Assembly: GCA_002269645.1 (NCBI GenBank)
Contig: NIVC01000469.1
Location: 310,001-374,000 of the forward strand
Reading direction: 5' to 3'
Source of the DNA: Macrostomum lignano
Lineage: Eukaryota
DNA: 64,000 nucleotides
The position numbers and the translations under genes are program-made. Positions 11,915-52,701 of this stretch are shown here, in pieces. A model generated the notes under the pieces. The model did not search any database. It saw only the letters and a program-made list of their open reading frames with translations, and was not told the DNA's origin. Every line of letters starts with the position of its first letter. The stretch's first letter is position 1.

Positions 11915-12422
11915 CTTTCCCCTGTCTTTCTTTCCTCCGCCCTGCGCAGGGCCTTGCTTGGACTCAACCGCAGGGACATCAGGACGGTGACCATGGGCCC
12001 TCTCGGGTCATGGCTGTTTTGCCAGGCATCGCCACCTCCAGGGGAAAATCCGCAGTGAGGAATGCCCTTTCTGCCTCTCCGGTGTCGAGAATGCGGAGCA
12101 CTTCATCTGTGAATTTGTGAATCTGCCTTTACTCAGGACAGGCTCACCTACCTCGGCCCAAACCCGGACCTCTCCGACGTTTTCAGGCCCGAGAATCTTT
12201 GCCAGCTAGTCCGCTACCTAAGGGCTACCGGGCGAGCGACAATCCACCTCCTGGATTCTCCGGAAGGGGACTGCGCTGCGGACACCGGCACCACCGGAAC
12301 TTCCTGCGCGACACCGCAGCACTAGCTGCCCGTGGTCTCCAGGGGCTAGCGAAATGGGCGGCAACGCCTCCTCGCTGTCTCCGGACGCACGGAGCCCCCT
12401 GCAGCTAAGTAAGTAAGTAAGT
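11915..12422 (+). mobile_element. 5'-truncated non-LTR retrotransposon 3' end (RNase H/CCHC type, LOA/I-group-like) with (TAAG)n tail
   Basis: Near-identical by eye to 30540-31029; encodes GLNRRDI...[18 protein letters not shown] with indels; ends TAAGTAAGTAAGTAAG. Confidence 0.82.
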
Positions 12423-13125
12423 TGGTCTCGCACTTGGCACTCAGACAGACAGGTTTTACACCGTCACTAGTTGACTCAACTGATTGCAGATTACAGACAC
12501 CTTGGCCAAAATAGTGCTCACACTGTACCTATCAATCAATTTGAGTTCTCAATCACAAGGACAACTGAAGTATATATAACGTAACTTCAGTTGTCCTTGC
12601 TCAGTCATTCTATCGGCAAAAGAAACAAATCTGGAAGGTGTTATCTAATACGAGCTACATCAGATTTAGTAAGGTTGCTGTGGATTCAAAGCTTATGGAG
12701 CGTCTTTTCAAGCAGAAATATTGAAATCATTTTGCACTCCGTTGCTGCAAGTCATCAAGATGTCAAGTCTTGCTCTGCAGTCTGTTCTCTCAGAGACTAT
12801 TAGAGGTTGCGCACTCGTAGTTCACTGAGCACCCATTCTCATGAAGTGGAACCATCAAATAATTACCACTCAGATGACCAATTATCCTTGAATTCGATGT
12901 CGCACACAATAAAAAAATTGTATTAAACTTTATTCAACTGTCCATAATCAAAGGAAACAAAGATTCCAAACTATTATTTAGCTTGAACAATTTCATCCAA
13001 GTTTGCTTGGCTTGGTAAACCAATTTATTTTGCAACAAATGTTTGTTGGAGGGCGTTGAATTTTCGACACAGCTCGTACAGTGTCAATCAAATTCTCCGC
13101 AGCATTTTAGCCGGCAATCGGGTGC

Positions 13126-13865
13126 TCACCTCCGCTTGTCAGGAAATGCGGCCAGGGCGGATCGCTTCACAATAGCGTAGTAGCAGGCTCGGATGGCGGC
13201 CTCTGTCTCAGGCTCGTAATTGCACTCATCGGGCATGGAGTACGTCTTGATAGCGTTCTCCACCTGCGAGCGGATTTGCTCGTAGGAGACGCCGCCGATG
13301 AGCTCGCAGTTCCTGTTCTCGACGATGCACGGCCTGAAGCGAGTCTCGAACAGCTCCATCATCTGCCTCTCAGCGTTCTGCAAAAGGTTCAAACGAATTT
13401 TTGTCTCAGCTTTCTGCTCTGGTCTGTTTACATAAAGAAGCACTGAACGTAATGACGCACCGCAATCTCGGTGGGATCGGTCTTGCCAGCGATAGCGCTC
13501 TGCCTGTAGGACCTGAGCATTACGGCGTAGCAGCATGAGCGGACGCACGATTCGATAGTGACGTTGCAGCTGCACTCAGAGGGCAGCCTGAGGGAGTGCA
13601 GCCGGCGGACAAGCGGCGCGAAGCTTTCGAAGTCCCAGCCGACATTTTCAGGGCAGTTGATTTTGTTCAGGATGCATGGCTTCGCATACTGTTCCAGCAT
13701 CCGCAGTGTATCTTCGCGATTGGTCTGCGAAATGGATATTAGTGTTTGAACTGAACATTAATTTTGCAACGGTAAACTAACAGTCTATTGGAGACTTACA
13801 GGCGCAGATGGAGTGTTACAAAGAGCCACGAGAGGCAGAACGACGAGAAGGGCAAAACGGAACAT
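13126..13865 (-). CDS. Unrecognised secreted two-domain Cys-rich protein, copy A (193 aa); exons 13865-13800, 13724-13461, 13377-13126
   Basis: Exon 1 is a signal peptide (MFRFALLVVLPLVALCNTPSAP); both introns are GT-AG and phase 0; the ORF is open to TGA; the gene is paralogous to copies B and C with the same intron positions. Confidence 0.88.
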
Positions 13866-14734
13866 TTTTTGCAGAAGGCGATTACTTTTTGCCAGAACTC
13901 ACACAACAGCTCTTAGCCAGTTAAAGTTATCGAAAAATCGGGAATTTTAACGTCCTTTTATTCATTTTTAATAACAAGGCCCAGTGCTCTCCAGTCCAGA
14001 CACAGCTGACTAAACTAATCAGGAGAAAACTCTAACTTTTGCTGTCTTCAACTGCTTACTAAAGCGCATCCGGGGTACCGGATTCGCAAATTTTGAGCAA
14101 ATACAGGACAATTAGCAAGTAATTAGCGAGTCCTGAAACTAATTTTGTGTCTCTCCAGACTGTTCATACAGCTGGCTGCTTGCCCACACTGATTTCGCCT
14201 GCAAATAGGAAGTGAAATTTCAAGTTTTCTCGATCGAAACTCCTCTTAATTGGTTGATCAATAAACTCCATTTGATTAAGGGTGACTGAATCGGAATTGC
14301 TTAGTTGGAACAAAAGCCTTTTAAAAAAGAAAGGAGCTTCCTCTGAAGCTGAAGGGTGGGGTTGAAATGCAGCTAGACTACCATCCTTAACATTGATCAG
14401 TGTGTGTAACACAAGAAGCCAAAGCTCTCGCACACAATGCGGATGCAGCAGTTCATTAGGGCTGCATCGAAGCTGCAGCCTGATTGGGATAAGCATGCAG
14501 CGAGGTCAGTTGACAGCGGCTTTTAAAAAACATTTGTTGCTGAAAATATTGAGTTTTTTAGTTTTAGCAAGGGTTACATACGAGCGTACACCTGGAGTTT
14601 GAGACTTTTGAGTTTTGAGACTAACTCTGCCTGAAACATATGTTAGGCGCATATTACCCAGTTTCAAAGTTTGTTTTATTTGACCCGGTTCATAAATTTC
14701 ATACATTTACATTTACAATCATGCATGTATGCAT

Positions 14735-15165
14735 ACACACACATACATCCCCCCACACACACGCATACATGCATTCACACATACATACAGTCACATGCAT
14801 ACATACATTCACAGACTTACCCTACGTTCACTCACACACACGCATACAAGCATCCACACATACATACAGTCACATGCATACATACATTCACAGACTTACC
14901 CTACGTTCACTCACACACACGCATGCATGCATTCACACATACATACAGTCACATGCATACATACATTCACAGACTTACCCTACGTTCACTCACACACACA
15001 CATGCATGCATTCACACATACATACAGTCACATGCATACATACATTCACAGACTTACCCTACGTTCACTCACACACACGCATGCACGCATTCACACATAC
15101 ATACAGTCACATGCATACATACATTCACAGACTTACCCTACGTTCACTCACACACACCTACATAC
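14735..15165. repeat. 79-bp CA-rich minisatellite, about 5.5 copies
   Basis: CAGTCACATG recurs at 14788, 14867 and 14946. Confidence 0.92.
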
Positions 15166-15254
15166 ACGCATAAAACTAACAAAATTACTCAGCACGACAG
15201 AATGACGCCGAATGCAACGCAAAGCAAAAACGCGTGTTTTGCATTGAGCTTGCT

Positions 15255-15362
15255 CGTTTAAGAGCTTCCTCGGACAGCGTCCAGACGGTCCAGGTCCTGG
15301 CGGCATACATTGAGGTGGTCTCCACGATCTCCTGGAAGAGCTGCGACTTAACGCCAGTCATA
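15255..15362 (-). mobile_element. Possible short RTE-type LINE RT C-terminal fragment
   Basis: Minus-strand translation KSQLFQEIVETTSMYAARTWTVWTLSEEALKR loosely resembles the RTE motif K.RLF...V...LLYG.ETWTL; short and weak. Confidence 0.35.
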
Positions 15363-16009
15363 CATACAGCGCCGCTAGAACAGGTGAATTAAAAAGTAAA
15401 AAAGAAAGATAAAAAGAAAACAGTTAAAAAAGAAAAAAAGTCAATAAGCATAATGAAATAATACCAAGTCTTTTCAATATTTCAAGTTTTAATTTAATTC
15501 GCAGAGTCAGTTTCAATTTGTCTAGAGAAATCTTAAACTGAATTGGAACGAATTCAATACTTGTAAACCTAGGCAAGTTAGGCATTTTAAATAGCTCCAT
15601 GTTAACATTGCTATGTGGTTGTATGGAGTCGGTCATATTGATTGGGTAAATGAATATTACACGAGTGTTACACTCGTATATTTCAGAACTTTTTAGCCGA
15701 GCGTCTTGCTACGGTACTTGGCTTTCTTTTTTGCTCTGCGAAAAATAAAATTACTGTGCTGGCTCACATATGTGTATGGCACTAAGCCCACAAACACAGC
15801 ACACATCTTTTGCCCATAAACCACACGATACTATATAAATCCTTCAGGCTTTTGCGGCACGAGGATTTCCGACTTTTTGCCCTAGACAACCTGCTGGATT
15901 TGTATTTTTTCTTGATTTCAAGAGCGGGCCGAGAAACGACATTCTTCGGCCCGCTAGTCAAACTGCATTCGCTTCAGTCTTGCGCAGAGGCTCAGAGGCT
16001 TTGAAAAAG

Positions 16010-19000
16010 CTTTGAAAATAGTCTATGGTTTATGCGACGCGATACAGTACTCTCCTTTGTTTGCTAAGCTTCGAATCTTTTCATTTAGGAGCACAAGACC
16101 CTAGGAGCGCGCTGCCGCTAAAATATAGCTTAATTTCAAACTACCATAATTCATTGACTTGGCGTTCCTCAAACAAAACATGGCGACGAGGATAAAAAGC
16201 AACTGAGGGTCGAGGAAAATTCCGCACCTGCTGCCCTCAAAATGGCTCAGTCAATGGAGTACCGTCTTGGTGAGATGCCACTTTCTTACCCAGAGATAGA
16301 ACAATACTTCAAACGACTTCTGTTCTACCTGGAGGCAACTGAGAAGAATGAGCAAGCTAAAGCAGTCCTACTGGCTACCTGCGGTGAATCTGCATTCAAT
16401 CTGGTGGAGGAGCTGATAAAACCAGAAGACATCACCAAGGCCGGTGTTACGTTCAAGTCGATTCAGGACACTTTGCTCGAGCACTTCAAACCGAAAGTTC
16501 TGCTTCATTATGAGCGACATGTGTTCCATTCTACTGTTCAAAAGGACGCGGAGAGCATTACAAATTTCGTTGCACGGCTCAAGCAACAGGCGAACAAGTG
16601 CCAATATGGTGAATTGCGCGAAGACCTGATCCTGTCTCAGTTCATCTTCGGACTTCGTAGTCAGAATCTGCGGCAAAAACTGCTATCCAAAGGCACGCTT
16701 GAGCTTAATGATGCTATTCAAGAGGGACTCATGACCGAGTCAATTGCAACTGCTACAGACAAGCCGGAAACTATCGCTAATGTGCAGAATGCTGGGACAT
16801 TCTCGAGACCAAGAAGCTGCAGTGCCCAACGCTCTGTCTCATTCAAGCAACCTCAGGGACATCTGCATAATCAGTCGAGCGGCAAACCTAAAGGTAAAAC
16901 GGCTAAGTGTCACACCTGTGGGAAATCGGGACATCTACGATCAGCATGCAGGTTCCGAGAAGCCAAGTGCCATAAATGCGGCAAGGTAGGACATCTAGCT
17001 ACCGTGTGCAGATCAAAGGCTATGAACGCAATCCAACGAATGCCAAGCTGCAGCCCTTCACCAGGGAACACTAGCTCTTACCATCTGGAACTCATTCATG
17101 CGGTTAGACAGCCAAAAACGGGTTACTCAGATCAGTGGTTTGTTCGGTGTCGTCTAGGAAAAACCGAAGTCAACATGCTTGTGGACACCGGCAGCCAAGT
17201 AACCGTGGTTCCGGATCAAATCGCCAAGAGCTCAGGCTTAGAGTTACAGCCAGTCAGCCAAAAACTAAGATCTTACGGAGGTTTTCAAGCTACGGTCACT
17301 TCTGTCATCTACGGGGCAAAGCTACAGGTTATTGGTGGCAAGTCTGCTTCAGAAAACATCTACGTCGGTCATGATACAACAGCTATTCTGGGCATGAACT
17401 TCATACCGTCCCTAGACCTAGTGCGAATGGATCAAGCGGTTCGAGTGTCGAATGAACACAAGTGCCTACCAGTCGTCCGAGATCAAAACTCAAACTTCAT
17501 TGCCAGCTTTCGCTTACGTTCGGGTGTGAGTATGGAAGGCATGCGATTTCCTGCTCGCTCACTTCCTTTCTCCATGAAGTCTATGGTAGAAACCGAACTA
17601 AGAAGACTTCTTGCTTCAGGAATCATCTATTCAGTCAAGAATCCTACTGTTGCAGCGCCAATAGTCCCAGTGGTCAAGCCCGAGGGATCAGTAAGACCTA
17701 TTCGACTGTGTGGCGACTACTCTATGACGCTCAATCGTCTTATTGACGTGGACAAGTACAGGTTTCCGAAGATGGAGGAGATCCTGGCTAAGATTCCCAA
17801 CGCTAAATTCTATACGGTCCTAGACTTAGAACAGGCCTTCTTACAGGTGGCTCTATCCCCTGAGAGCCAAGAGCTCACATGCATTTCTACTCACATGGGA
17901 TTCTTTGCATTCAGATATCTACAATTCGGGATTTCCGCGGCGCCTCTAATATTTCAGGAAATCATGGACGAAGTTCTTCGGGATGTACCATTTACAGCCT
18001 CATATCAGGATGACATCATTATTGGGACTCCTGAGGATTCAGCCGAAAAACACATGCAGCTGGTTCGTCAAGTCAAGGATCGTTTGGCAAACTGCGGGTT
18101 CAAGATTAACCAGAGAAAGTCTCAAGAATGTCGTAGAGAAGTTCGATTTCTTGGCTTCATTTTGCGCGATGGAGGCATGCACCCCGACCCAGCACGAATG
18201 GAGGCGTGGAAGAGGTTACCATATCCAAAAGACAAAGACCAACTGCGCAGCGCTCTGTGCACCTTCCGACACTATGGCGTCTTCTGCAAGAACTTTTCAA
18301 TGATTGCACGACCGTTATATCAGCTGCTGAAGAAAGGAGTTCACTGGAGTTGGCATGGAAAGCAGTCTGAGGCATTCGACAAGCTTAAGAGCATTATTGC
18401 AGGCGGTGTGATAACCGCATACGACATTACGAAGCCGTTGTACTTGATTTGTGACGCCTCTAAGGATGGCCTCGGGTACGTTCTAGCTCATGATCCAATG
18501 CAAAGACAGGTTGTCTGGCTAGGCAGCCGAGTCCTGACTCCAGCGGAGAGCAACTACGCTAACATTGAGCGGGAGGCGTTAGCGATCGTCGAAGGGACCA
18601 GATACTTTTATCAGTACCTCGCGGGTCGAAAATTTACCATCATTTCTGATCACCGACCGCTTCAGTACATATTTAATCCGAACAAGGTCTCCGAGCGAGT
18701 TTCAGCAAGGATTCAGCGATGGGCATTACTGTTAAGAGCTTACGATTACAATGTGATGTACGTCAAGGGTGAAAAGATGTACGCTGCAGACACTTTGTCT
18801 AGACTTCCATTGCAGTCGGACTCAGCGGATCAGAAGATCAACCTCCTAGAAATCAATGCACTGGAGGGTTTCGGAAACTCCGAACAGCTACTGCAGAGGA
18901 TCGTGCGAACTAAAGATTACAAGTTGGACATGCTCAAGAAGTACATTCAAGACGGCTGGCCTGCTTATCCACCACCAGCTATGCTGCCATATGCACGCAA

Positions 19001-20359
19001 TAAGTTGGAATACACACTCCAAAATGGAGTGATTTTCAAAGGATTGCGCATCGTCCCACCCTCTAGCCTGAGAAGCGAAATTCTTCAGATGCTTCACGAG
19101 GACCACCCCGGCATCGTGAGGATGCTACGTCTATCCAGACAGTACTTCTGGTGGCCCGATATAGATGCTCAAATCAATGCATTCGTTCAACGTTGTGTTC
19201 AATGCCAGCTACATGCTAGGAAAAGAAGCAATGCAAATCTGTCGTCATGGCCGGAGACAAAAAGTTTCTTCGAGAGAGTTCACGTTGACATCGCTACTTT
19301 CAAAGGTCAACGCTTCCTTGTCCTGGTTGACCATTTTCAAAATGGGTAGATGTACAGTCCGTGCCGTCAATGAAAGCATCCATTGTCATCAGTGCGCTGA
19401 GAAAAACGTTCAAGTATACCGGATTGCCGAAAAATCTGGTTTCGGACAATGGTGGAACTTTTGTGGCAGAAGATTTCGTTACTTTCCTGCGAGAGAACTA
19501 CATCGTCCACACACTTACTCCCCCAGGACATCATCAGTCCAACGGTCAGGTGGAGAGAGTCATTGAAGAATTGAAGTTTTATTTAAGAAAGTTAAACGCT
19601 GGTGCCAATCTTTCTGAGCTGGAAAGGCATTTAGCAGGATTCTGCCTGTTTCAGAATACGACTCCTCACTGCAATGGATCAATTCCAGCACTTCTGGTGT
19701 TTCAGCAGTCGCCCCGAACACGTCTATCAGCCGTTTGTACAGAGAGGACGAGGCCGGTTCAAGAGCCAGTTCCTGTTTTCGTGCGTGTGGAGCACAAGGA
19801 GCAACGGGTCCCCTCTGAGCTGAAGTCTACAGTTGGTACAAATACTTTCCGAGACGCAGAAGGACGACTAGTGCACCAGTCCGATGCTACTGCTCGTACA
19901 GAGGAACTACCGATTGATGATTCGAAGCAGTCTGGGATCACCCCTCGTGATACTGATGCAACTACGTGCCAAGACAGTGCTACGACAAGTCCAATGCGCC
20001 ATGCAATGCAGTCGCCTAGGCACAAGGAACACGGTGTGCTCGAGTTCCGTAGGAGCACGCGAGTCAGGCGACCTCCGGAACGATTGACTTATTACTGAAT
20101 TGCTTGAGGCGTAACTTTGAACTGCACTGTATAAGCATCGGTGGGGGTGTTGCGTATTGCTATGACTACTGCAAAGTATAGACTTTTACTTTGAAAATAG
20201 TCTATGGTTTATGCGACGCGATACAGTACTCTCCTTTGTTTGCTAAGCTTCGAATCTTTTCATTTAGGAGCACAAGACCCTAGGAGCGCGCTGCCGCTAA
20301 AATATAGCTTAATTTCAAACTACCATAATTCATTGACTTGGCGTTCCTCAAACAAAACA
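16010..20359 (+). mobile_element. Young Ty3/Gypsy LTR retrotransposon (Mag/K02A2.6-like). 3' LTR 20148-20359 (TG...CA); 5' LTR 16010-16180 lacks its first 41 bp; PBS 16181-16193; PPT ~20140-20147
   Basis: 171 bp are identical between the LTRs. PBS TGGCGACGAGGAT is complementary to the 3' end of eukaryotic tRNA-Ser(GCU) (ATCCTCGTCG-CCA). GGTGGGGG precedes the 3' LTR. Confidence 0.95.
16242..20098 (+). CDS. Gag-Pol polyprotein (two CCHC knuckles, aspartic protease, RT, RNase H, integrase) with one -1 frameshift near 19335
   Basis: CHTCGKSGHLRSAC, CHKCGKVGHLATVC, LVDTGS, RLCGDY, YQDDII, CDASKDG, SDHRPL, integrase H..HPGI...C..C, VSDNG, SNGQVER. CATTTTCAAAATGG is one T short of the expected DHFSKW. 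Confidence 0.93.
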
Positions 20360-20470
20360 AATACAAACCCTGTGATTCTAATATCTCCTGACAAATTCAA
20401 ACCTGACCCATAGCAGGGTCTTTCTGAGCAAGCTACAATGAGCAAGCTTCTGTCAAGCTACAATGATAGA

Positions 20471-20742
20471 TTGTGTATATGGTTTTGGAGGTAGACAATG
20501 GATAAATAATCAAGCGGTCCCAGTGCGTGACAACGATTGTCTGGCGAGCGCCGGTAGGCGCGAGCCATAGACAAATCGTTGTCACGTGCTGCGACCGCTG
20601 ATTCTTTGCATTGTTTTTCTGTTTGCCGATCCTACAGACAATGCATTGTTTGCAGTAATGGATTGTTCTGCATTAAAAATGTGAATAATGATCGTCAAAT
20701 TGCTAAAATTTATCATTGTCTATGACAAAACCATATACACAA
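20471..20742. mobile_element. Fold-back MITE-like element of about 270 bp with an internal hairpin
   Basis: TTGTGTATATGGTTTTG (20471) and CAAAACCATATACACAA (ending 20742) form a perfect inverted repeat that extends inward imperfectly; inner hairpin CGTGACAACGATT...AATCGTTGTCACG at ~20524-20586. No TSD identified. Confidence 0.65.
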
Positions 20743-21069
20743 ACACATTGTCTCATGAATGTATTTTTAGAAGCCTAAAATAATGATTCCTAAGCGTGGA
20801 ATAATGAGCGTACAGCATGACACAATGATCTTATCTTTAAAAATAATTGTTGGAATATTTTTGCATTAGCATTAACTTTCCGCTGCGTAAATAAAATGCA
20901 AGACAAAGATTTAAACACAGATTTTGCAATGTTGTACCCAGTACCAAACTAGCGTAACTTCATCGGATATCGAGCTTTGTTTATTTCCATTGTTCTCATA
21001 TAGATCTGATACACTGATCTGTGCATCACGTCAAGTCAATTTTCCGATTCATTGTGAGTTGCCGGGTGC

Positions 21070-21797
21070 TCACTTCTTCTCAGGAAAGGCGGCCAGAGCA
21101 GACCGCTTCAAGAAAGCGTAGTAGCAGACGCGGATGGCGGTCTCCGACTCGACCTCAAAGTTGCACTCGTCGGGCAATGAGTAGGCCTTGACCATCTGCA
21201 GCACCTGGTTGCGAATTTGCTCATAGTTGATGCCGCCAGCCAGCTCGCAGTTCTTGTTCTCCAGAATGCACGGCTTGTAGTAAGTCTCGAACAGCTGCAT
21301 CATCTGCCTCTCGGCATTCTACAAACGTGCGTTCAGCTGCACTTACTCTTAGGGAAACTTGAGGACTGCCAGCAAGAATGTGTAACTCACTTCGATCTCA
21401 GCAGGATCGGTCAAGCCGTTGAGCACGCTCTTCCTGTAGGTATTCAGCATGATGGCATAGTAACACGGACGGATGCACGACTCACTGCTGACGTCGCAGT
21501 CGCACTCAGGAGGCGGCCTGTGAGCTCGCATCTGGCGGACCATTGGAGCGAAATTCTCGAATTTCCAATCGTCGTTCTCAGGCGGACAGTTCGTGTTGTC
21601 CACGATGCAGGGCCTCACGTGCTCCTCCAGCATCTTTAGCATCTCCTCTCGACTGGACTGAAACAATTGGAATGTTAAAGCGGCTTCTACACCAGCCTCA
21701 TCGCCAAAGCACTGCATTAGTAACATTCTCTTACCGTGGATGCAGTGATGCACAGAGCGACAATTGGCAGGACGACAAGCAGTGCAAAACGAAGCAT
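21070..21797 (-). CDS. Unrecognised secreted two-domain Cys-rich protein, copy B (192 aa); exons 21797-21735, 21657-21391, 21318-21070
   Basis: Signal peptide MLRFALLVVLPIVALCITAST; phase-0 GT-AG introns; open to TGA. Confidence 0.9.
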
Positions 21798-22789
21798 TGT
21801 CGTTCGGTATTCGGACTCGATTTGGACTGTCGGCTTTTTTGGAGCTGTGTGAACGACTGTCTTGTATTGTTGAGCATGGAGACTGGCAACGATCCTTGCT
21901 TCCTTATATCCCCTCGATTCTCAAGCTGAAATGACTCTCTATTGACTCAACTGAACAAACTCTTCTGATATCAATCCAACTACTCGAGGTCGATATTGGA
22001 ATTGAATTGGCTTTTCTGCATTTAGGGGAGAGAAAGTTTTGCTAATTGTTTTTTTCGGCGCAGTTCCACTTCACTCACTACTTCATTTTAAAGAGATTCG
22101 GAATTTGATGACAGATATTTTGGAAATTGGAAGCATTACATTCTTTTTCTAGACTGACTAGGAAGATATTCTTGTTTTGGTTAACATTACTGCATGAAAT
22201 TCTGGGAGAAGTTTCCCTTTTACCCACCCTAGCAACGCCGCTAAATTGAAATGGTGTTCTCCTAGACTAATCTAAACCTCTACAAACTACCTTGGTATTT
22301 AGTATAATCTGCCTTGGTATTGAGCACACGAAAAACAGTTATTAGCAATAAAGGTCGGTTAAACATAATTTATTCGTGCAATTAAAAGCCTTTGTCAATA
22401 CCGGTAAAAGTTACGAGCGTAAAGCTAAATGCGGTTCACTTCAGTGAATTACAATAAAATTGAAGTGATCGGATTCGTTCATTTGTTTGTTTAGCTGATT
22501 GAAAGCGGCTGAAATTTTCTAGAGAACAGAATGAAGCAGCAATCCGATTATTGAACTGAAAAACTATTGTTTGCACATGAGAAAGTTCGGTAGCATTTGA
22601 GCACTCGATTTTTAGTCGTTGCACTGCGTGAACAGCAAAACTCTAGAGACTCAGTTTTTTACTGTCAGATTTGCAACTAGCTTCAATATTGCTTTCGTTG
22701 TCAGTATCAAAATTAATTGCTCTTTTGCATCAAAAATTTGGCTCCACAAATTCTTAATGTAGGGGGGCTCTGTGGGGCTTCATTGATGC

Positions 22790-23485
22790 AGGTCGAAGGC
22801 TGTACGGTAGCGGCGTCCCATTTAAAGGCTGGAGGGTAGCGACGTCCCATCAAAGGGCTAGGGAATGGTGATGTCTCATCAAAGGGCTAGGGAATGGTGA
22901 TGTCTCATCGAAGGGCTGGATAATGGTGATGTCTCATCAAAGGGCTGGAGGTTGGAGATGTGTCATCAAAAGGCTGGAGGATGGAGATGTGTCATCAAAA
23001 GCCTGGAGGACGGTGATGTCTCATCGAAGGGCTGGATAATGGTGATGTCCCGTCGAAGGGCTGGAGGATGATGATGTCTCATCGAAGAGGAGGGTAGCGA
23101 CGTCCATCGAAAGGCTGGAGGACGGTGATGTCCTATCGAAGGGCTGGAGGATGGTGATGTCCCATCGAAGGGCTGGAGGATGATGATGTCTCATCGAAGG
23201 GCTGGAGGACGGTGATGTCTCATCGAAGGGCTGGATAATGGTGATGTCCCGTCGAAGGGCTGGAGGATGATGATGTCTCATCAAAGAGGAGGGTAGCGAC
23301 GTCCATCGAAAGGCTGGAGGACGGTGATGTCCCGTCGAAGGGCTGGAGAATGGTGATGTCCCGTCGAAGGGCTGGAGGATGGTGATGTCTCATCGAAGGG
23401 CTGGAGGATGGTGATGTCCCGTCGAAGGGCTGGAGGATGGTGATGTCTCATCGAAGGGCTGGAGGGTAGCGACGTCCCATTGAAG
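22790..23485. repeat. Degenerate 29-bp minisatellite (GGTGATGTCYCRTCGAAGGGCTGGAGGAT)n with apparent higher-order duplication
   Basis: Repeated unit read directly; the variant block GAGGGTAGCGACGTCCATCGAAAGG recurs at ~23090 and ~23290. Confidence 0.9.
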
Positions 23486-24359
23486 GATCGGAGGACATTG
23501 TCCCTTGATTTTACTTCAAGATAAGTGTGCTTTGAGCAGACTGTGGAAGCAAGTTCGCTACACTGGGGTTCAGGCCCGATGAGACCAATATCGGGTGGTG
23601 AAGGCAGGTGCAAGGTGAGAAGTTAAGCATTACTTTTTAGCGTTAAACGCGAAGTACCTACTCGTAGAAGAAAAATAAGCTTCATTGGACTGCCCATCAA
23701 AATATAGAACTACCTTTCAGCAAATTTTAAAATAAGAAGTCCCAAATTTTATCTATAAACTGGTTCGTTGAATGTTGCTGCTTAGATACGAGTGTATAAA
23801 TTGGTTGAATCATAGATTACGAGTACAATAACAAACGATGCCATCGTGGGATGAAGAAGCCATGGGTTAAAAAATTCCCGGAGCAAAATAAGAACCAAAA
23901 TGATTGATAGATTCTAGGTGTTTTTGTACGCGTACGAGTATTCTAACAAAAAGTTCATTGATATTCAAATCAAATGCATTCGCTCTGTCGGTGGAAATTA
24001 CCTGTTTGCTTGAGTTTTTATGAATCGATAAATGGAAAATCATCTCTACGAGTACACAGACAGCTGTGCAACCAATAATCCACCCATTTATGCCTCTGCA
24101 CCTCCTCTTAATTGCTTTTGCGTTTGCCCACCTGGGCAGCTTCGACTTTGAAATCGGCGGCTCATAATGTCGTAGTCAGCTCATAATCCTTTCAACGTTA
24201 AATTTCCTTTTGATAAAAACAGCAGCTGAGTTTACATTAAACCGCGCGGTAGCTGATCTGCAGACTGACTCAATAAAAGGTAGTCCGATTGTCTCAGTTG
24301 TTTGACTATTTTACAGGCATTAATGGTTTAAACCTTGCCTGAACTGCATCAGCTGCACC

Positions 24360-25009
24360 ATGAAGCTGCAGAATCTGATTCTGACGCTGTGCTTTGCGAT
24401 GGCGGCCGTCGATGAGGAGTCTGCAGCTGTTTGCGCTTAAAATCCCTGATGATTCTCCTCACCAAAATCACCCTAGCCATATCTGATGTGCTCATACACA
24501 AGAGAATCGCTCCCCATATATTCGTACTTTCTAGATGCCTGTCCAACTCTCTACTTGAGCAGGAGCAACATTAGCGGGGTCATGTCATCGAGCCACGGCT
24601 TCCCGCGAGTCTGCGGTGTTGAGTACTGCCACAATCTGAATTGCAACTACGAACTCGTTCCCGCGCGCAACAACTCAGGCCGCGGGGTGATTGTCCGGTT
24701 CGACATTTCAACACGGAGAGCTATCACGATTTTGTGCGGCTGGAGTACATCAACTTGCAGGGACAGCTCGTCACTGGACAGTTCAGCGGAAGTGTCGGCT
24801 CGTTCCGTGCGCGTCTGCCCGCCATGCAGGGCACTCCGGTTAGGATGCGGTGGAACACGGACAGCAGTGTGAACAGCCTCGGCTTCCTAATGAGGTTCCA
24901 TGCTGTGCCGGCTCCCCCTGTGCGCCGGTACAGGCTGGGTGGCATGCTGGAAGTGAGTGAGAACGGAGTTCGCGGCTCAGTCAGGGTCGAGAAGGCCAAG
25001 CGAAAGTGA
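24360..25009 (+). pseudogene. Single-CUB-domain secreted protein, copy 1, probable pseudogene; exon 1 24360-24411, exon 2 24535-25009
   Basis: Signal-like MKLQNLILTLCFAMAAV. The donor position reads AT (24412-13) where the paralogues have GT. There is a 1-bp deletion near 24700 (DACPTLY...VRFD switches frame to HFNTESYHD). It ends RYRLGGMLEV...EKAKRK like the paralogues. Confidence 0.82.
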
Positions 25010-25645
25010 CTGACATATGTAGCTGCTGGTTTCTGAAATGGTAGACGCGCAATGATATTTAATTTAAAGATGATTAAAATAAGCAAGCATAAAATATACT
25101 GGATTATCTGTTCAACTCTTGGCCCACTCGCTTACAAAATGACCTTGCAGCTTTCGTTACACCAACACAGTGCGGATAGCGCTCTTTCGACGCTTATAAG
25201 TTAGACTATACACTATACGATGACATTAAAGTGCAATTCAAAGCTGTTGTTTACCAGATGTGGGGGCACATTACAATGGGCTTCGAATTAAAAAACTCAT
25301 GTTTAAATTTTTGAAGCATTATTAGCTGATATTTTTGTTGAGGTAACCTTTCTTCAAACTTCACCTTGAAACTCTACAGGACTGAAACTGGAAGAGCCAA
25401 TGCATTATTCCAGAACTGTTTGCTATAGTACAAACCCATTGAATAATATTCCGATATCGATTGAGTAAGATCTTTAACTGGAAACTGGAAAGTTGAGTCA
25501 ATAGAGAGTCATTTCAGTTTGAGAATCGAGGGGATATAAGGAAGAAAGGACGTTGCCAGTCTCCATGCTCAACAATACAAGACAGCCGTCTCACACAGCT
25601 CCGCAAAAGCCGACAGTCCAAATCGAGTCCGAATACCGAACGACA

Positions 25646-26373
25646 ATGCTTCGTTTTGCACTGCTTGTCGTCCTGCCAATTGTCTCTCTGTGCATCACTG
25701 CATCCACGGTAAGAGAATGTTACTAATGCAGTGCTTTGGCGATGAGGCTGGTGTAGAAGCCGCTTTAACATTCCAATTGTTTCAGTCCAGTCGAGAGGAG
25801 ATGTTAAAGATGCTGGAGGAGCACGTGAGGCCCTGCATCGTGGACAACACGAACTGTCCGCCTGAGAACGACGATTGGAAATTCGAGAATTTCGCTCCAA
25901 TGGTCCGCCAGATGCGAGCTCACAGGCCGCCTCCTGAGTGCGACTGCGACGTCAGCAGTGAGTCGTGCATCCGTCCGTGTTACTATGCCATCATGCTGAA
26001 TACCTACAGGAAGAGCGTGCTCAACGGCTTGACCGATCCTGTTGAGATCGAAGTGAGTTACTCATTCTTGCTGGCAGTCCTCAAGTTTCCCTAAGAGTAA
26101 GTGCAGCTGAACGCACGTTTGTAGAACGCCGAGAGGCAGATGATGCAGCTGTTCGAGACTTACTACAAGCCGTGCATTCTGGAGAACAAGAACTGCGAGC
26201 TGGCTGGCGGCATCAACTATGAGCAAATTCGCAACCAGGTGCTGCAGATGGTCAAGGCCTACTCATTGCCCGACGAGTGCAACTTTGAGGTCGAGTCGGA
26301 GACCGCCATCCGCGTCTGCTACTACGCTTTCTTGAAGCGGTCTGCTCTAGCCGCCTTTCCTGAGAAGAAGTGA
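25646..26373 (+). CDS. Unrecognised secreted two-domain Cys-rich protein, copy C (192 aa); exons 25646-25708, 25786-26052, 26125-26373
   Basis: Inverted near-identical copy of B; phase-0 GT-AG introns; intact ORF. Confidence 0.9.
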
Positions 26374-26599
26374 GCACCCGGCACTCACAATGAATCGGAA
26401 TATTGACTTGACGTGATGCACAGATCGGTGTATCAGATCTATATGAGAACAATGGAAATAAACGAAGCTCGATATCCGATGAAGTTACGCTAGTTTGGTA
26501 CTGGGTACAAAGTTGCAAAATCGGTCTTTAAATCTTTGTCTTTGATATTGGCAACAAAATGTCAATACCAATATTCTCGGAGTTAACTTTAACGATAGA

Positions 26600-26808
26600 G
26601 CTGAGTATAGAGTACATGAAGTTTCAGATGCTCCGAGTTTAACTTTTGTAGGCTTGGGTTCAAGCACCAGGTTTCTTTCAGGACAAATTTACATGTCGAA
26701 CCTCTATGTTTGTACTCAGAGTGCACACTTGCCCTTGAGTACAGGCTCGGTGGCATTCTGAAGTCAGTGGAAATTAAACGCAAGAGGCTGAAAAAACCAT
26801 TCATCTAA
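26600..26808 (+). pseudogene. Degenerate remnant of a further CUB-family copy (3' part)
   Basis: TACAGGCTCGGTGGCATTCTGAAG (YRLGGILK) matches TACAGGCTGGGTGGCATGCTGGAAG of copy 1; upstream ATAGAGTACATGAAGTTTCAG resembles CTGGAGTACATCAACTTGCAG. Confidence 0.45.
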
Positions 26809-27399
26809 TTATTGCTTAATTATGTCAAGAAACTAGCAAACTAACATTTTGAAACGTCTCCCTACTGCATGTATCTATCTATTGCAATATCTGTATTTAA
26901 GTTTATAATCAAATCTGTTCGTCTGTAAGCCATTGCTATTTTAGGAAAGCACGTCAGTACTTTCAGCAGTACTGAAGCACGCAAGCCACAAGTCGATGTG
27001 TAGCCTCTTTTGGTATCCACGGCAGCGACCGTTAGCTATTGAACTGCTTAAATGACGACAGCCCTAAGTAGACACAAAAAAGTCAGTATAAGCAGTTGTT
27101 TTTTCGCTAACCCTGCGCTGAAAATCTGCATCAGTGAAACTCGACACCGAAAAAAATGTTCTGTGTTCAGCACTGAGAGCTTTGAACGGGTCTGTTTTGC
27201 TGGCTCAGCTTCTGTGCCTCACCTGCAGGAATTATAATTTTAGTTGGGACTGCTCACGTGGGTCTTACATTGATATGAGGTATCGCTGTGCCAGCTGAGA
27301 AAGAGAGGGGCGAGAGGATGAAGAAGAGAAAAGTGATGTTAGATTGGGGAGAGTAGAGAGAAAGAAGAGAGGGGAGAAGAGGGGAGAAAGGGGAGGGAT

Positions 27400-27781
<382 letters not shown>

Positions 27782-28505: not shown

Positions 28506-29113
28506 ATGAAATCTTTGGGTCTTCTTCCGTTGTTTCTGGTCTGCCTGATCGGTGCGTCAGTTGGTAAGTGAAGATAGCTGCTGGATGAATTACTCTGCAG
28601 CTTAACGTCTGCAAGCGAAAGTCCACTCGCCCCCGCCTTTCAGACGCCTGCCCGACGCTGTACCTGCAGACTCTTCGCGGTTACGAAGGCGTTCTGTCAT
28701 CCAACTACGGCTTTCCGCAGAGGTGCAACGACCAATACGCGCACAACCTGAATTGCAGGTACGAGCTGGTCTCCGGGCGCAACAATCCCGGCCGAGGAGT
28801 GTACATCAGCTTCGCCTACTTCAATACCGAGCTCAGCTACGACAAGGTGTTTATTGAGTACACCAACACGCAGGGTCGCAACGTGACCGGCTACTTTTCT
28901 GGCAGCGTGGGCGGATTCAGCCGCGTGTTGGACTCTCAGAGGGGAACCCCAGTTCGACTGATTTTCATCACCGACCACTCCGTCAGTGCCTACGGCTTCC
29001 TGGTGAGGTTTAAGGTTGCCCCGGCAATGCGATTCAGACTTGGCGGCACGTTTGAAGTTGACCAAAACGGACTCGAGGGCACTATTCGCGTTGACAGGGC
29101 TAAACGGAAGTGA
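28506..29113 (+). CDS. Single-CUB-domain secreted protein, copy 2, intact; exons 28506-28563 and 28644-29113
   Basis: Signal MKSLGLLPLFLVCLIGASV; phase-1 GT-AG intron; DACPT...GVLSSNYGFP...YAHNLNCRYEL...VYISFAYFNTELSYDKVFI...VRLIFITDHSVSAYGFLVRF matches the CUB consensus. Confidence 0.9.
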
Positions 29114-30330: not shown

Positions 30331-31029
<699 letters not shown>

Positions 31030-31510
31030 AAGACTGAGGGAGGCATTATTCATTGCTGAGCGTATGAGCATATTAAATCTGGTGCATTCTAGTAAATTCT
31101 TCACACTGCACCAACCACTTTGATGTCCATGCAGGTTCACCACTAGCCAACTTGTCAGATAGTAGTACTTTCCAGTCACCAATCCTATCCATGTCATTGA
31201 ATTACTCAAATTTAGCTGCCTCTTTCGCATGAAAAATAATATATTCTTCTATCTCGCTAGTGTATTTACGTGAAAATTTGGCCTCCAGCCCGATTTCCAC
31301 GAAAGCCGAGTGTAGCGTCCTTCTACTCTAGTTGTCCATGTACGAGCTACTAGCGTAATAATGCTTCGAAAATTTAAACGTGACTTCCAAAATCGGGTTT
31401 TTGGAAAGCTCAGTTTTGGAAAACAATGAGTACGAGCGTAACATTTCGGATAAAGTTTCTGATTTACTATAGTTTTAGGAGCAACAAAACATTATGCAAC
31501 TTTTTAGACT

Positions 31511-32160
31511 ATTTACAGAATCTGACACTCATTCAGACATCCTGACACGCATTTACAGAATCTGACACTCATTCAGACATCCTGACACGCATTTACAGAA
31601 TCTGACACTCATTCAGACATCCTGACACGTATTTACAGAATCTGACACTCATTCAGACATCCTGACACGTATTTACAGAATCTGACACTCATTCAGACAT
31701 CCTGACACGCATTTACAGAATCTGACACTCATTCAGACATCCTGACACGCATTTACAGAATCTGACACTCATTCAGACATCCTGACACGCATTTACAGAA
31801 TCTGACACTCATTCAGACATCCTGACACGCATTTACAAAATCTGACACTCATTCAGACATCCTGACACGTATTTACAGAATCTGACACTTATTCAGACAT
31901 CTTGACACGCATTTACAGAATCTGACACTCATTCAGACATCCTGACACGCATTTACAGAATCTGACACTCATTCAGACATCCTGACACGCATTTACAGAA
32001 TCTGACACTCATTCAGACATCCTGACACGCATTTACAGAATCTGACACTCATTCAGACATCCTGACACGTATTTACAGAATCTGACACTTATTCAGACAT
32101 CTTGACACGCATTTACAGAATCTGACACTCATTCAGACATCCTGACACGAGCTTACAGAC
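31511..32160. repeat. 40-bp minisatellite (ATTTACAGAATCTGACACTCATTCAGACATCCTGACACGY)n, about 16 copies
   Basis: Direct reading; highly homogeneous. Confidence 0.97.
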
Positions 32161-32596
32161 TGTGACAGGGATTTTAGTGCCTTGGAATCTTTTAACTGAT
32201 TTTTTCAGCCATTATCGCCTAAAAAGGAATGCGAATTTCAAAAGCCACCGACAGCCCATGCAGTTGTAACCTACTCAAACAGAGTAGTGCCTTGGTGAAC
32301 CCAAAATGCCACTGGTTAAACAGAATGATTGATTCAGCAAATAAGTAAATTTGTTGTTGGGCCATAATTTAATTAAATCCGTGCAAGTCGCTCTAATAGC
32401 TTGCTCAATTAAGCTTGATTTTTGTGAATAATGCTAGCAACAGAAGCAGGTGAGTCTACAAGGTGCTAATTGATTACCAATGCAGCAGCTAAAATCTTCA
32501 GGTCTATAAAAATCGGCGGGTTTGCAGTCGCGAAAAATTCTTCAATAAAGTTGAACGGCGATTTATCGACAACAATTGCTGCGCCTATTGAAGAAA

Positions 32597-33945
32597 ATGA
32601 AGCTGCTGGGACTTCTGATTGCGACTATCGCGGTGTCTGTCGGTAAGTTTTCTTGTCTAGTAGGTTTGACAGGTGCCGCTCCCAGTGTCTAACAGGTATC
32701 TCTCCCAGTGTCTAACAGGTATCGCTCCCAGTGTCTAACAGGTATCGCTCCCAGTGTCTAACAGGTATCGCTCCCAGTGTCTAACAGGTATCGCTCCCAG
32801 TGTCTAACAGGTATCGCTCCCAGTGTCTAACAGTCGCTCCAGTGTCTAACAGTCGCTCCCAGTGTCTAACAGGTATCTCTCAGTGTCTAACAGGTATCGC
32901 TCCCATTGTCTAACACTGTCGCTCCCAGTGTCTAACACTGTCGCTCCCAGTGTCTAACAGGTATCTCTCAGTGTATAACAGGTATCGCTCCCAGTGTCTA
33001 ACAGGCATCTCTCCCAGTTGACTAACAGGTATCGCTCTCAGTGTCTAACAGGTATCGCTCCCAGTGTCTAACAGGTATCGCTCCCAGTGTCCAACAGGTA
33101 TCGCTTCAGTTCTAACAGGTATCGCTCCCAGTGTCTAACAGGTATCGCTCCCAGTGTCTAACAGGTATCGCTCTCAGTGTCTAACAGGCATCTCTCCCAG
33201 TGTCTAACAGGTATCGCTCCCAGTGTCTAACAGGTATCGCTCTCAGTGTCTAACAGGTATCGCTCCCAGTGTCTAACAGGTATCGCTCCCAGTGTCTAAC
33301 AGGTATCGCTCCCAGTGTCTAACAGGTATCGCTCCCAGTGTCCAACAGGTATCGCTCCCAGTGTCTAACAGGTATCGCTCCCAGTGTCCAACAGGTATCG
33401 CTTCCAGTGTCTAACAGGTATCGCTCCCAGTGTCTAACAGGCATCGCTCCCCTAAAAATGCACCTTCAGACGCCTGCCCAACTCTGTTCCTCACGCCGGA
33501 CCGGCAGAGCGGTGTCCTGTCCTCCAACTACGGCTATCCCCGCAGCTGCTCCAGAAACTACGTCAACAGGCTGGACTGCACCTACGAGCTGATCTCCGGT
33601 CGCAACAACTATGGCAACGGAGTCAATATCAGCTTCGCCTACTTTAGCGTCGAGACCCGGTACGATCGAGTTTACATCGAGTACACCAATTCTCGCGGCC
33701 AGCGGGTCACCGGCTACTTCACTGGCAGCCTGGCCGGCTTCAGCAGGCAGCTGCCGGCCATGCGCGGCACCCCCGTGACACTCCGTTGGGTCACCGACCG
33801 CTCGGTCACCAGCGTCGGCTTCCTGCTGCGATTCAACAGCCGCAACAGGTCACCGGAGCGCCGCTTCCGCCTGGGCGGCACCGTGAACATCGTCGGCAAC
33901 GAGGCCCGCGGCTCCTTCCGTATTGATCCATTCAAGAAGAAGTGA
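32597..33945 (+). CDS. Single-CUB-domain secreted protein, copy 3, intact; exons 32597-32642 and 33470-33945
   Basis: Signal MKLLGLLIATIAVSV; phase-1 GT-AG intron; DACPTLF...GVLSSNYGYP...LDCTYEL...ISFAYFSVETRYDRVYI...LRWVTDRSVTSVGFLLRF; C-terminal RFRLGG...FKKK. Confidence 0.9.
32675..33450. repeat. 23-bp minisatellite (CCCAGTGTCTAACAGGTATCGCT)n filling CUB copy 3 intron 1
   Basis: Period read directly (32704, 32727). Confidence 0.96.
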
Positions 33946-36170: not shown

Positions 36171-39100
36171 ATGTTCAGCAAGGCGTCCGCCACGCTTCTC
36201 CTGATGCTGCTGGGAGTGTCGGCACTGCTGCTGGCCGGAGCCGAGGGCGGCAAGGACCGGCACAAGGATCCGCGAGTCTTCGACGCCAAGCCGTCGGATG
36301 CTGAGCACGAGGACGACGATGACGATGAGACCGAGAGCGGCGGCGACGACCATCACGACGATGACAAGCACGGAGAAGAGGGAGACGATGACGATCATCA
36401 CGATTCGAAATATGACCACGAGTCCTTCTTGGGTGAGAATATCTGCTTCGCGATAGAATGCGTGTGTATGGCTGTTTTATGAAATATTGCTCATACTCAA
36501 GGTCATATTCATGCTCATACTCATGGTCACATTCATGCTCATACTCAAGGTCATATTCATGCTCATATTCAAGGTCATATTCATGCTCATACTCATGGTC
36601 ATATTCATGCTCATACTCAAGGTCATATTCATGCTCATATTCAAGGTCATATTCATGCTCATACTCAAGGTCATATTCATGCTCATACTCATGGTCATAT
36701 TCATGCTCATACTCAAGGTCATATTCATGCTCATTTTCAAGGTCATATTCATGCTCATACTCATGGTCATATTCATGCTCATACTCATGGTCATATTCAT
36801 GCTCATACTCATGGTCATATTCATGCTCATACTCATGGTCATATTCATGCTCATACTCATGGTCATATTCATGCTCATACTCAAGGTCATATTCATGCTC
36901 ATACTCATGGTCATATTCATGCTCATACTTATGGTCATATTCATGCTCATACTCAAGGTCATATTCATGCTCATACTCAAGGTCATATTCATGCTCATAC
37001 TCAAGGTCATATTCATGCTCATACTCAAGGTCATATTCATGCTCATACTCATGGTCATATTCATGCTCATACTCAAGGTCATATTCATGCTCATACTCAA
37101 GGTCATATTCATGCTCATACTCATGGTCATATTCATGCTCATACTCATGGTCATATTCATGCTCATACTCATGGTCATATTCATGCTCATACTCATGGTC
37201 ATATTCATGCTCATACTCATGGTCATATTCATGCTCATACTCATGGTCATATTCATGCTCATACTCATGGTCATATTCATGCTCATACTCATGGTCATAT
37301 TCATGCTCATACTCATGGTCATATTCATGCTCATACTCATGGTCATATTCATGCTCATACTCATGGTCATATTCATGCTCATACTCATGGTCATATTCAT
37401 GTTCATATTCAAGGTCATATTCATGCTCATACTCATGGTCATATTCATGCTCATACTCATGGTCATATTCATGCTCATACTCATGGTCATATTCATGCTC
37501 ATACTTCATGGTCATATTCATGCTCATACTCATGGTCATATTCATGCTCATACTCAAGGTCATATTCATGCTCATACTCATGGTCATATTCATGCTCATA
37601 CTCATGGTCATATTCATGCTCATACTCATGGTCATATTCATGCTCATACTCATGGTCATATTCATGCTCATACTCATGGTCATATTCATGCTCATACTCA
37701 TGGTCATATTCATGCTCATACTCATGGTCATATTCATGCTCATACTCATGGTCATATTCATGCTCATACTCATGGTCATATTCATGCTCATACTCATGGT
37801 CATATTCATGCTCATACTCATGGTCATATTCATGCTCATACTCATGGTCATATTCATGCTCATACTCATGGTCATATTCATGCTCATACTCATGGTCATA
37901 TTCATGCTCATACTCATGGTCATATTCATGCTCATACTCATGGTCATATTCATGCTCATACTCATGGTCATATTCATGCTCATACTCAAGGTCATATTCA
38001 TGCTCATACTCATGGTCATATTCATGCTCATACTCATGGTTATATTCATGCTCATATTCAAGGTCATATTCATGCTCATACTCATGGTCATATTCATGCT
38101 CATACTCAAGGTCATATTCATGCTCATACTCATGGTCATATTCATGCTCATACTCATGGTCATATTCATGCTCATACTCATGGTCATATTCATGCTCATA
38201 CTCATGGTCATATTCATGCTCATAATCAAGGTCATATTCATGCTCATTTTCAAGGTCATATTCATGCTCATACTCATGGTCATATTCATGCTCATACTCA
38301 AGGTCATATTCATGCTCATACTCATGGTCATATTCATGCTCATACTTATGGTCATATTCATGCTCATACTCAAGGTCATATTCATGCTCATACTCAAGGT
38401 CATATTCATGCTCATACTCAAGGTCATATTCATGCTCATACTCAAGGTCATATTCATGCTCATACTCATGGTCATATTCATGCTCATACTCATGGTCATA
38501 TTCATGCTCATACTCATGGTCATATTCATGCTCATACTCATGGTCATATTCATGCTCATACTCATGGTCATATTCATGCTCATACTCATGGTCATATTCA
38601 TGCTCATACTCATGGTCATATTCATGCTCATACTCATGGTCATATTCATGCTCATACTCATGGTCATATTCATGCTCATACTCATGGTCATATTCATGCT
38701 CATACTCATGGTCATATTCATGCTCATACTCATGGTCATATTCATGCTCATACTCATGGTCATATTCATGCTCATACTCATGGTCATATTCATGCTCATA
38801 CTCATGGTCATATTCATGCTCATACTCATGGTCATATTCATGCTCATACTCATGGTCATATTCATGCTCATACTCATGGTCATATTCATGCTCATACTCA
38901 TGGTCATATTCATGCTCATACTCATGGTCATATTCATGCTCATACTCATGGTCATATTCATGCTCATATTCAATGTCATATTCATGCTCATACTCATGGT
39001 CATATTCATGCTCATACTCATGGTCATATTCATGCTCATACTCATGGTCATATTCATGCTCATACTCATGGTCATATTCATGCTCATACTCATGGTCATA

Positions 39101-52654: not shown

Positions 52655-52701
<47 letters not shown>

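Follow-up and report, generated by a model that had tools for sequence, protein, structure and literature searches.

A family of predicted secreted proteins with exon-encoded, cysteine-rich and putatively helical domains in Macrostomum lignano

Introduction

Saposins, insect CSPs and OBPs, the Er pheromones of Euplotes and the attractin of Aplysia are the closest described systems for the gene family reported here, three members of which lie in a 64,000-nucleotide stretch of the Macrostomum lignano genome (assembly GCA_002269645.1, contig NIVC01000469.1, positions 310,001 to 374,000 of the forward strand; this whole stretch is called the window below). In saposins, the Cys pairs are nested across both domain ends (1-6, 2-5, 3-4) in a bundle of four or five helices. 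Insect CSPs and OBPs are lineage-restricted, tandemly duplicated, small secreted helical proteins with two or three disulfides, and two-domain "dimer" OBPs exist. A C-x6-C motif is found in CSPs, whose disulfides are short-range, and the "minus-C" and "plus-C" OBPs lose or gain Cys pairs together. The Er pheromones and attractin, which are water-borne, are small secreted helix bundles with three disulfides, taxonomically restricted and devoid of enzymatic motifs, that consist of a single domain of 40-60 residues. A secreted protein with a single CUB domain, an architecture that will also concern us here, is that of the mammalian spermadhesins.

The three genes in question, designated A, B and C, lie between positions 13126 and 26373 of the window, and each encodes a putative signal peptide followed by two Cys-rich domains, D1 and D2. 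Their family is undescribed, although GenBank already lists A, B and C as hypothetical proteins. In kind, the proteins are familiar: lineage-restricted, tandemly duplicating, small, apparently secreted and disulfide-stapled helical proteins.

Gene structure and the repeated domain

An earlier note on this DNA, made from the sequence alone, had claimed three intact three-exon genes at 13126-13865, 21070-21797 and 25646-26373, each with a signal-peptide exon and two phase-0 exons. Coordinates and structure turned out to be exact to the base, with the exons as follows.

13800-13865, minus strand: gene A (BOX15_Mlig029205g3; protein PAA82461.1), exon 1, start codon and signal peptide MFRFALLVVLPLVALCNTPSAP
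13461-13724, minus strand: gene A, exon 2, domain D1, 88 amino acids (aa), seven Cys (the additional one in SCCYA)
13126-13377, minus strand: gene A, exon 3, domain D2, 83 aa, four Cys, C-terminus ..FPDKRR, then stop
21735-21797, minus strand: gene B (BOX15_Mlig032940g4; protein PAA82463.1), exon 1, signal peptide
21391-21657, minus strand: gene B, exon 2, domain D1, 89 aa, six Cys
21070-21318, minus strand: gene B, exon 3, domain D2, 82 aa, four Cys, C-terminus ..FPEKK, then stop
25646-25708, plus strand: gene C (BOX15_Mlig032940g3), exon 1, signal peptide
25786-26052, plus strand: gene C, exon 2, domain D1, 89 aa, six Cys
26125-26373, plus strand: gene C, exon 3, domain D2, 82 aa, four Cys, then stop

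The assembled exons encode 193 aa in A and 192 aa in both B and C. With exons of 66/63, 264/267 and 252/249 nt (A versus B and C), every exon length is divisible by three, and all introns of the three genes are therefore phase 0. The introns measure 72-83 nt and run from GT to AG in six of six cases. Exon 1 codes for a typical signal peptide (MLRFALLVVLPIVSLCITAST or, in A, MFRFALLVVLPLVALCNTPSAP), and on reading the N-termini as classic signal peptides we take the three proteins to be secreted. The mature protein, ~20 kDa after a signal peptide of ~21 residues, is hydrophilic and acidic to near neutral (isoelectric point 5.0 in C, 6.5 in A), with a basic C-terminus (KRR or KK). When gene A was searched against the loci of B and C with tblastn, the expectation value (E) was ~1e-68, a similarity far beyond chance, and no copies besides A, B and C were detected over the whole window.

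The second claim of the note was that exons 2 and 3 are homologous to each other. The peptides quoted for them are present, and the two domains, of ~85 residues each, match significantly in BLASTP (E=4e-16 in C, 7e-10 in A). D1 of A, B and C contains six conserved Cys in the pattern C-x6-C-x27-C-x-C-x6-C-x3-C, four of which are located in the last third of the domain, and the domain signature in these proteins is [RK]-P-C-[IVL]-[IV]-x4-C ... P-x-E-C-x-C-x6-C-x-R-x-C-Y-Y-A. In D2 of all three genes, Cys 1, 2, 3 and 6 are kept, and positions 4 and 5 are F/Y and A. The alignment thus agrees with the note both in the six Cys of D1 and the joint absence of Cys 4 and 5 from D2 of every copy, and in its description of A as a diverged copy with the frame kept and a seventh Cys in D1. 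The additional residue in SCCYA brings the mature protein of A to 11 Cys, an odd number, versus 10 in B and C. Presumably D1 forms three disulfides and D2 two. The co-loss in D2 is consistent with one Cys4-Cys5 disulfide, and counts as a single evolutionary loss event.

Deposited models and transcripts

All three genes are already present in GenBank as "hypothetical protein". The models of A and B are identical to the predicted proteins, and that of C, which is PAA82464.1 with 219 aa, uses the ATG at 25565, 81 nt before the exon-1 ATG, and is otherwise the same. The GenBank annotation of assembly Mlig_3_7 was built solely from RNA-seq and transcriptome assemblies with open reading frames (ORFs) called by TransDecoder (PMC5730564). 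The models are thus transcript-derived and the splice junctions of A, B and C exist in RNA, so that spliced transcripts, whose absence would have argued against functional genes, are present.

The 27-codon extension of C (25565-25645) is probably 5' untranslated region or a mis-called start, because the corresponding ATG of B (at 21877; region 21798-21877) is out of frame due to an indel, because an independent transcript-derived model (P0001) has its 5' end one base inside ATG 25565, and because in both arms a TATA-like box occurs ~30 nt ahead of that point. These boxes and the candidate poly(A) signals, which are AATAAA motifs located 86-99 nt past the stops of A, B and C, were assigned by reading the sequence.

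25535-25541, plus strand: TATA-like box TATAAGG, putative promoter of C, ~30 nt ahead of where the transcript-derived model begins
21902-21908, minus strand: mirror-image TATA-like box, putatively of B
26457-26462, plus strand: AATAAA, putative poly(A) signal of C, 86 nt past the stop
20980-20985, minus strand: AATAAA, putative poly(A) signal of B
13024-13029, minus strand: AATAAA, putative poly(A) signal of A

Constraint and an inverted gene pair

Between A and B/C, synonymous divergence (dS) is 0.91-0.95 and nonsynonymous divergence (dN) 0.23, giving a dN/dS of 0.25, while only ~60% of intron positions match. Judging from this low ratio in the presence of diverged introns, the reading frames of A, B and C are held by purifying selection. 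Five nucleotides distinguish the coding sequences of B and C (dS 0.025), and the two genes are found head-to-head in the arms of an inverted duplication, identified by blastn and a repeat search.

20900-21952: left arm with gene B, including ~170 nt after its stop and 155 nt before its ATG
25491-26542: right arm with gene C, head-to-head with B

The arms (20900-21952 versus 26542-25491) are 98.0% identical across 1054 nt in blastn, and the spacer of this palindrome (21953-25490, 3.5 kb) includes a 29-nt satellite. From these divergences, the B/C palindrome would be either young or gene-converted, and the split between A and B/C (dS ~0.9) would be older. The same palindrome is present on another contig, NIVC01002407.1, which is collinear with 20822-27780 of the window at 97.4% identity. 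Hidden polyploidy is described for M. lignano in passages of PMC10733133 and PMC10468722, and the second collinear contig fits this description.

A direct repeat of ~485 nt, 94% identical between its copies at 11933-12417 and 30553-31032, flanks the whole A-B-C cluster, the copies lying 18.6 kb apart; it may be a dispersed repeat or have been left by a segmental event.

The wider family in M. lignano

A profile built from the six domains of A, B and C was scanned with hmmsearch against 1.84 billion (1.84e9) representative proteins. Seven matches were obtained, corresponding to seven clusters at 50% identity, and 7/7 are from M. lignano, with E between 1.5e-23 and 3.8e-4 for the paralogues. The count of three copies given in the earlier note therefore stands for the window, where tblastn found no more, and falls short for the genome, in which the family comprises at least seven such clusters. 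One of the paralogues, P0003, is a second two-domain protein with six Cys in both domains. Five clusters (P0004, P0005/P0009, P0006/P0010, P0007/P0013 and P0008/P0015) are secreted single-domain proteins of 108-137 aa. The family-wide signature is [RK]PC[IVL][IV]x4CP ... PxECxC ... CxRxCYYA, in which Cys1, Cys2, Pro, Cys3, Arg, Cys6, Tyr and Ala are invariant. We propose to define the family by a signal peptide, this signature and a whole domain on one phase 0-0 exon, all of which are found in A, B and C.

The single-domain paralogues and P0003 share with A/B/C the signature and the signal peptide and, in the four loci examined, the phase-0 intron behind the signal exon and the confinement of each domain to one exon. 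They differ in that six Cys are always kept and that most have a single domain with a variable C-terminal tail, whereas D2 of A/B/C has four Cys; pairwise identity between paralogue domains and those of A/B/C is only ~25-35%. In this alignment, the loss of Cys4 and Cys5 from D2 is specific to the A/B/C subfamily, P0003 keeping six in both domains. On the question of whether P0003 shares the duplication of A/B/C, P0003-D1 was closest to C-D1 and the placement of P0003-D2 was ambiguous.

Concerning the origin of the two-domain form, which the earlier note had attributed to exon duplication, the single-domain genes proved informative. All four of the loci examined have two exons, namely a signal-peptide exon and, after a phase-0 intron, one exon with the whole domain. 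Because a whole domain is held on one phase-0 exon in these genes, the domain exon is a symmetric 0-0 module that can be duplicated in frame. The exon structures thus support the view that the two-domain form arose when such a domain exon was duplicated in tandem with the frame preserved.

Additional copies were observed near two of the paralogues. A diverged copy, 72-77% identical, inverted and split across two frames, lies a few kb from P0004 (L002, 11933-12197, minus strand), and a diverged single-domain copy, ~50% identical, lies a few kb from P0007 (L006, 3802-3965, plus strand). As far as these copies indicate, the family grows by local duplication elsewhere too, with inversion in at least one case.

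The domain of P0010 also appears fused to a tubulin-tyrosine-ligase model as P0006, and in the UniProt/ParaSite models P0006, P0012 and P0014 a family domain is joined with sequence of the tubulin-tyrosine-ligase or RNase H/retroelement type. These three are probably gene-model fusions of the older assembly, not real architectures.

Predicted structure and searches for relatives

The earlier note had expected a helical product. In the AlphaFold2 model, D1 has three helices, which span residues 2-19, 33-46 and 59-79 of the peptide encoded by exon 2 (predicted local distance difference test (pLDDT) 83.5, predicted template-modelling score (pTM) 0.73), and the whole mature protein is predicted to contain two such three-helix units (pLDDT 81.3, pTM 0.49), in agreement with that expectation. 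Because pTM is 0.49 for the whole protein, it is uncertain how the two domains are oriented towards each other.

The note had also recognised no known family, and this held in searches of Pfam, of PDB by sequence and profile, and with Foldseek, none of which gave a significant match. With full-length A and C and 11 family domains, Pfam returned only sub-threshold noise at E<=10 (DUF7545, Tospo_nucleocap, PLA2_2, Kazal_2), and PDB gave no match below E=0.5 by sequence or by profile. Foldseek against PDB with the D1 and full-length models gave a best E of 1.6-2.7 and template-modelling scores (TM) <=0.34, with no saposin among the matches; taking PDB (both models) and BFVD (D1 only) together, the best E was above 1.5 and no TM exceeded 0.42. 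Foldseek is weak on short all-helical queries, and this null result means that no relative could be recognised; it does not prove the topology to be new. A word-indexed homologue search returned M. lignano proteins only and missed known paralogues, and is uninformative on absence.

UniProt automatic names are inconsistent within the family, A and B being called "Saposin B-type domain-containing" and P0005, P0009 and P0010 "WAP domain-containing". A WAP four-disulfide core was rejected: the domain has six Cys, not eight, is predicted to be helical, and among 11 members gave no Pfam WAP match at E<=10.

Neighbouring CUB genes

Genes for secreted single-CUB proteins are interleaved with A, B and C. 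Each consists of a signal-peptide exon and one domain exon and encodes a basic C-terminus (RAKRK, KAKRK, FKKK).

28506-29113, plus strand: single-CUB gene, 175 aa, Pfam CUB E=4.9e-6, C-terminus RAKRK
32597-33945, plus strand: single-CUB gene, 173 aa, Pfam CUB E=1.3e-6, C-terminus PFKKK
24360-25009, plus strand: third single-CUB gene, inside the B/C palindrome spacer, unannotated in the window

In the window, the intron donor of the third gene reads AT instead of GT (24412) and its exon 2 lacks one nucleotide, whereas the gene is intact (175 aa) on NIVC01002407.1; the window copy is a pseudogene or an assembly error. Together, A/B/C and the CUB genes look like a local cluster of secretory-cell genes.

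Proposed function and its alternatives

We propose that the A/B/C product would enter the secretory pathway, fold oxidatively, probably lose the basic residues at its C-terminus (KK / KRR) by trimming, and be discharged by a gland cell or another type of secretory cell. The released protein would be a soluble component of the secretion, non-enzymatic and serving in binding, signalling or structure, and may work jointly with the single-CUB proteins encoded by the interleaved genes. Pfam, PDB and Foldseek searches of A/B/C gave no sign of an enzyme or of a known domain. We put the probability that A/B/C are an extracellular non-enzymatic component of gland secretion at roughly 0.6. That the secretion is a reproductive one, seminal or antral, is a tentative addition which we would not expect to hold. 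Nothing in the interpretation offered by the earlier note was contradicted, and most of it gained support, but the effector role that it suggested (pheromone, seminal, mucus or toxin type) is speculative.

Several points weigh against the proposed role in gland secretion. The literature searched yielded no expression-site, proteomic or functional data on A/B/C. Eleven transcript-cluster IDs of the family were not found in the main texts of the searched Macrostomum literature or in the searched parts of its text-form supplements, nor Mlig029205 and Mlig032940 in the indexed main texts, and the complete table mapping published in-situ probes to the transcriptome (PMC7336406 Table S11) contains no family IDs. 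The family has been found so far only in M. lignano, for which the lack of translated data from other macrostomids in the libraries may partly account. The alignment behind the AlphaFold prediction is shallow (11 rows, one species), and the GenBank start of C would put 27 residues ahead of the signal peptide and so bury it. Keyword searches of the Macrostomum literature on cell atlases and on secreted proteins of the Cys-rich or CUB type returned nothing relevant.

The alternative that survives best is a specifically reproductive one, in which A/B/C would belong to the seminal fluid or the antrum, or serve as a mating signal carried by the water, and would evolve under sexual selection. The family is restricted to one lineage, has duplicated in tandem and encodes small, putatively secreted proteins, and its clustering with single-CUB secreted proteins recalls, by analogy, the spermadhesin architecture. 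Many validated prostate transcripts of M. lignano are likewise without homologues or domains (PMC5977470). However, a dN/dS of 0.25 indicates purifying selection rather than rapid adaptive evolution, and the family motifs were not found in the supplements of Weber et al. Furthermore, since its IDs are missing from PMC7336406 Table S11, which covers prostate, antrum, testis and ovary screens, the family is not among the screened reproductive candidates. Taking both sides together, we regard this explanation as unlikely.

A prohormone-like or regulated-granule cargo is somewhat less probable still. The Cys-rich domain would here serve as a carrier or sorting module, and the signal would come from bioactive peptides or C-terminal processing. 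Dibasic sites are indeed present in tails of the single-domain paralogues: P0008/P0015 end in ..RNQNQQRFPGKRSV, with a Gly-Lys-Arg amidation-type site (..RFPGKR within ..RFPGKRSV), and P0004 ends in ..KRFFGFQG (KR-FFGFQG). A, B and C themselves end in KRR or KK, and the adjoining CUB proteins in RAKRK, KAKRK or FKKK. The tails nevertheless differ among paralogues, P0007 having none and P0005 ending in an acidic run followed by RRRR. In addition, A, B and C have neither an internal dibasic site nor a Gly amidation donor, and the D1-D2 linker is not cleavable by dibasic logic.

Of comparably low probability, in our estimate, is a more far-reaching version of our own proposal, according to which the domain would be a new disulfide-stapled three-helix fold confined to macrostomids. 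The family, with A/B/C and P0003 as two-domain members and single-domain members bearing amidation-type tails, would then be a class of secreted signalling proteins not seen before, which either carry prohormones or pass between individuals as seminal or pheromonal signals, and one gland-specific gene cluster would deploy them along with the single-CUB proteins.

The UniRef name on A and B would make them divergent saposin-like (SAPLIP) lipid- or membrane-binding proteins, and they are of the small, secreted, helical, disulfide-bonded type with six Cys per domain. This is very improbable. No Pfam SapB_1 or SapB_2 match was obtained at E<=10 with the full proteins or the 11 family domains, and no saposin was found among the PDB sequence, profile or Foldseek matches. 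Three helices are predicted, not four or five, and the crowding of four Cys into the final third of the domain (C-x6-C ... C-x-C-x6-C-x3-C) is unlike the saposin layout. The sister paralogues being auto-named WAP, the names amount to inconsistent profile noise.

That A/B/C are non-functional relics or annotation artefacts, with frames open only through recent duplication, is scarcely credible: although B and C are 98-99% identical, so that the intactness of that pair proves little, and the CUB gene between them appears broken in the contig, A and B/C diverged long ago (dS ~0.9) and have still kept frames, splice sites and Cys positions at a dN/dS of 0.25 while the introns decayed, the models are transcript-derived, and intact copies exist on the homoeologous contig. 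A pseudogene or chance ORF was ruled out by dN/dS and transcripts. Transposon cargo was likewise rejected, as the duplicated arms contain no transposable-element genes and the retrotransposon close by was inserted separately and recently.

Other features of the window

A complete Ty3/gypsy-type long terminal repeat (LTR) retrotransposon lies between genes A and B. The element is missing from the homoeologous contig and is therefore a recent insertion.

16010-20359: complete retrotransposon
16010-16180 and 20189-20359: LTRs, 171 nt, 100% identical
16242-19349: ORF with gag, zinc knuckle, protease, reverse transcriptase, RNase H and integrase zinc domain
19361-20098: second ORF, integrase core

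Minisatellites occur throughout the window (36488-40062, 43571-46570, 965-2088, 31511-32167, 32669-33451, 48530-49705 and others), with units such as 24 nt repeated 149 times and 34 nt repeated 87 times. Long ORFs on both strands of these repeats (up to 1204 aa) and a Pfam "Gp5_trimer_C" match were dismissed as repeat artefacts. An annotated gene from ~36171 (plus strand), with a 360-aa product, shows faint EF-hand / SPARC / FSTL1-type matches and extends into the 24-nt satellite. The ORF at 52700-53650 (plus strand) has weak Pfam HLH and Hairy-Orange matches, and probably represents one exon of a gene for a bHLH-Orange transcription factor of the Hairy/E(spl) type.

Discussion

Taxonomically restricted secreted Cys-rich families occur in every invertebrate genome, and A/B/C alone neither open nor settle a long-standing question. 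What they offer is a well-delimited orphan family, whose signature is defined and whose birth through symmetric-exon duplication is clear, in a tractable flatworm in which transgenesis, RNA interference and in situ hybridisation are usable. The loss of one putative disulfide provides a natural experiment, and the palindromic B/C pair looks homogenised by gene conversion. The family could justify a new Pfam entry and a correction of the "Saposin B-type" and "WAP" automatic names. Were it to mark a particular gland or act between mates, it would be of interest for sexual selection and bioadhesion in Macrostomum.

Among the systems introduced at the outset, the Er pheromones and attractin showed no detectable sequence similarity to A/B/C and were not among the Foldseek PDB matches; what such protozoan and molluscan pheromones have in common with A/B/C is the way the gene family behaves. 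SAPLIP proteins resemble the family in having small secreted all-helical six-Cys domains, often in tandem within one precursor, and differ from A/B/C, for which three helices are predicted, with other Cys spacing and topology and no profile or fold match.

Membership in the insect CSPs or OBPs was rejected, as there was no OS-D or PBP_GOBP Pfam match (E<=10) and only the C-x6-C element is CSP-like. The A/B/C domain is smaller than that of CSPs and OBPs, and three helices would leave little space for a ligand cavity. With another Cys pattern and in another phylum, A/B/C are like the CSPs and OBPs in gene-family behaviour, not by homology.

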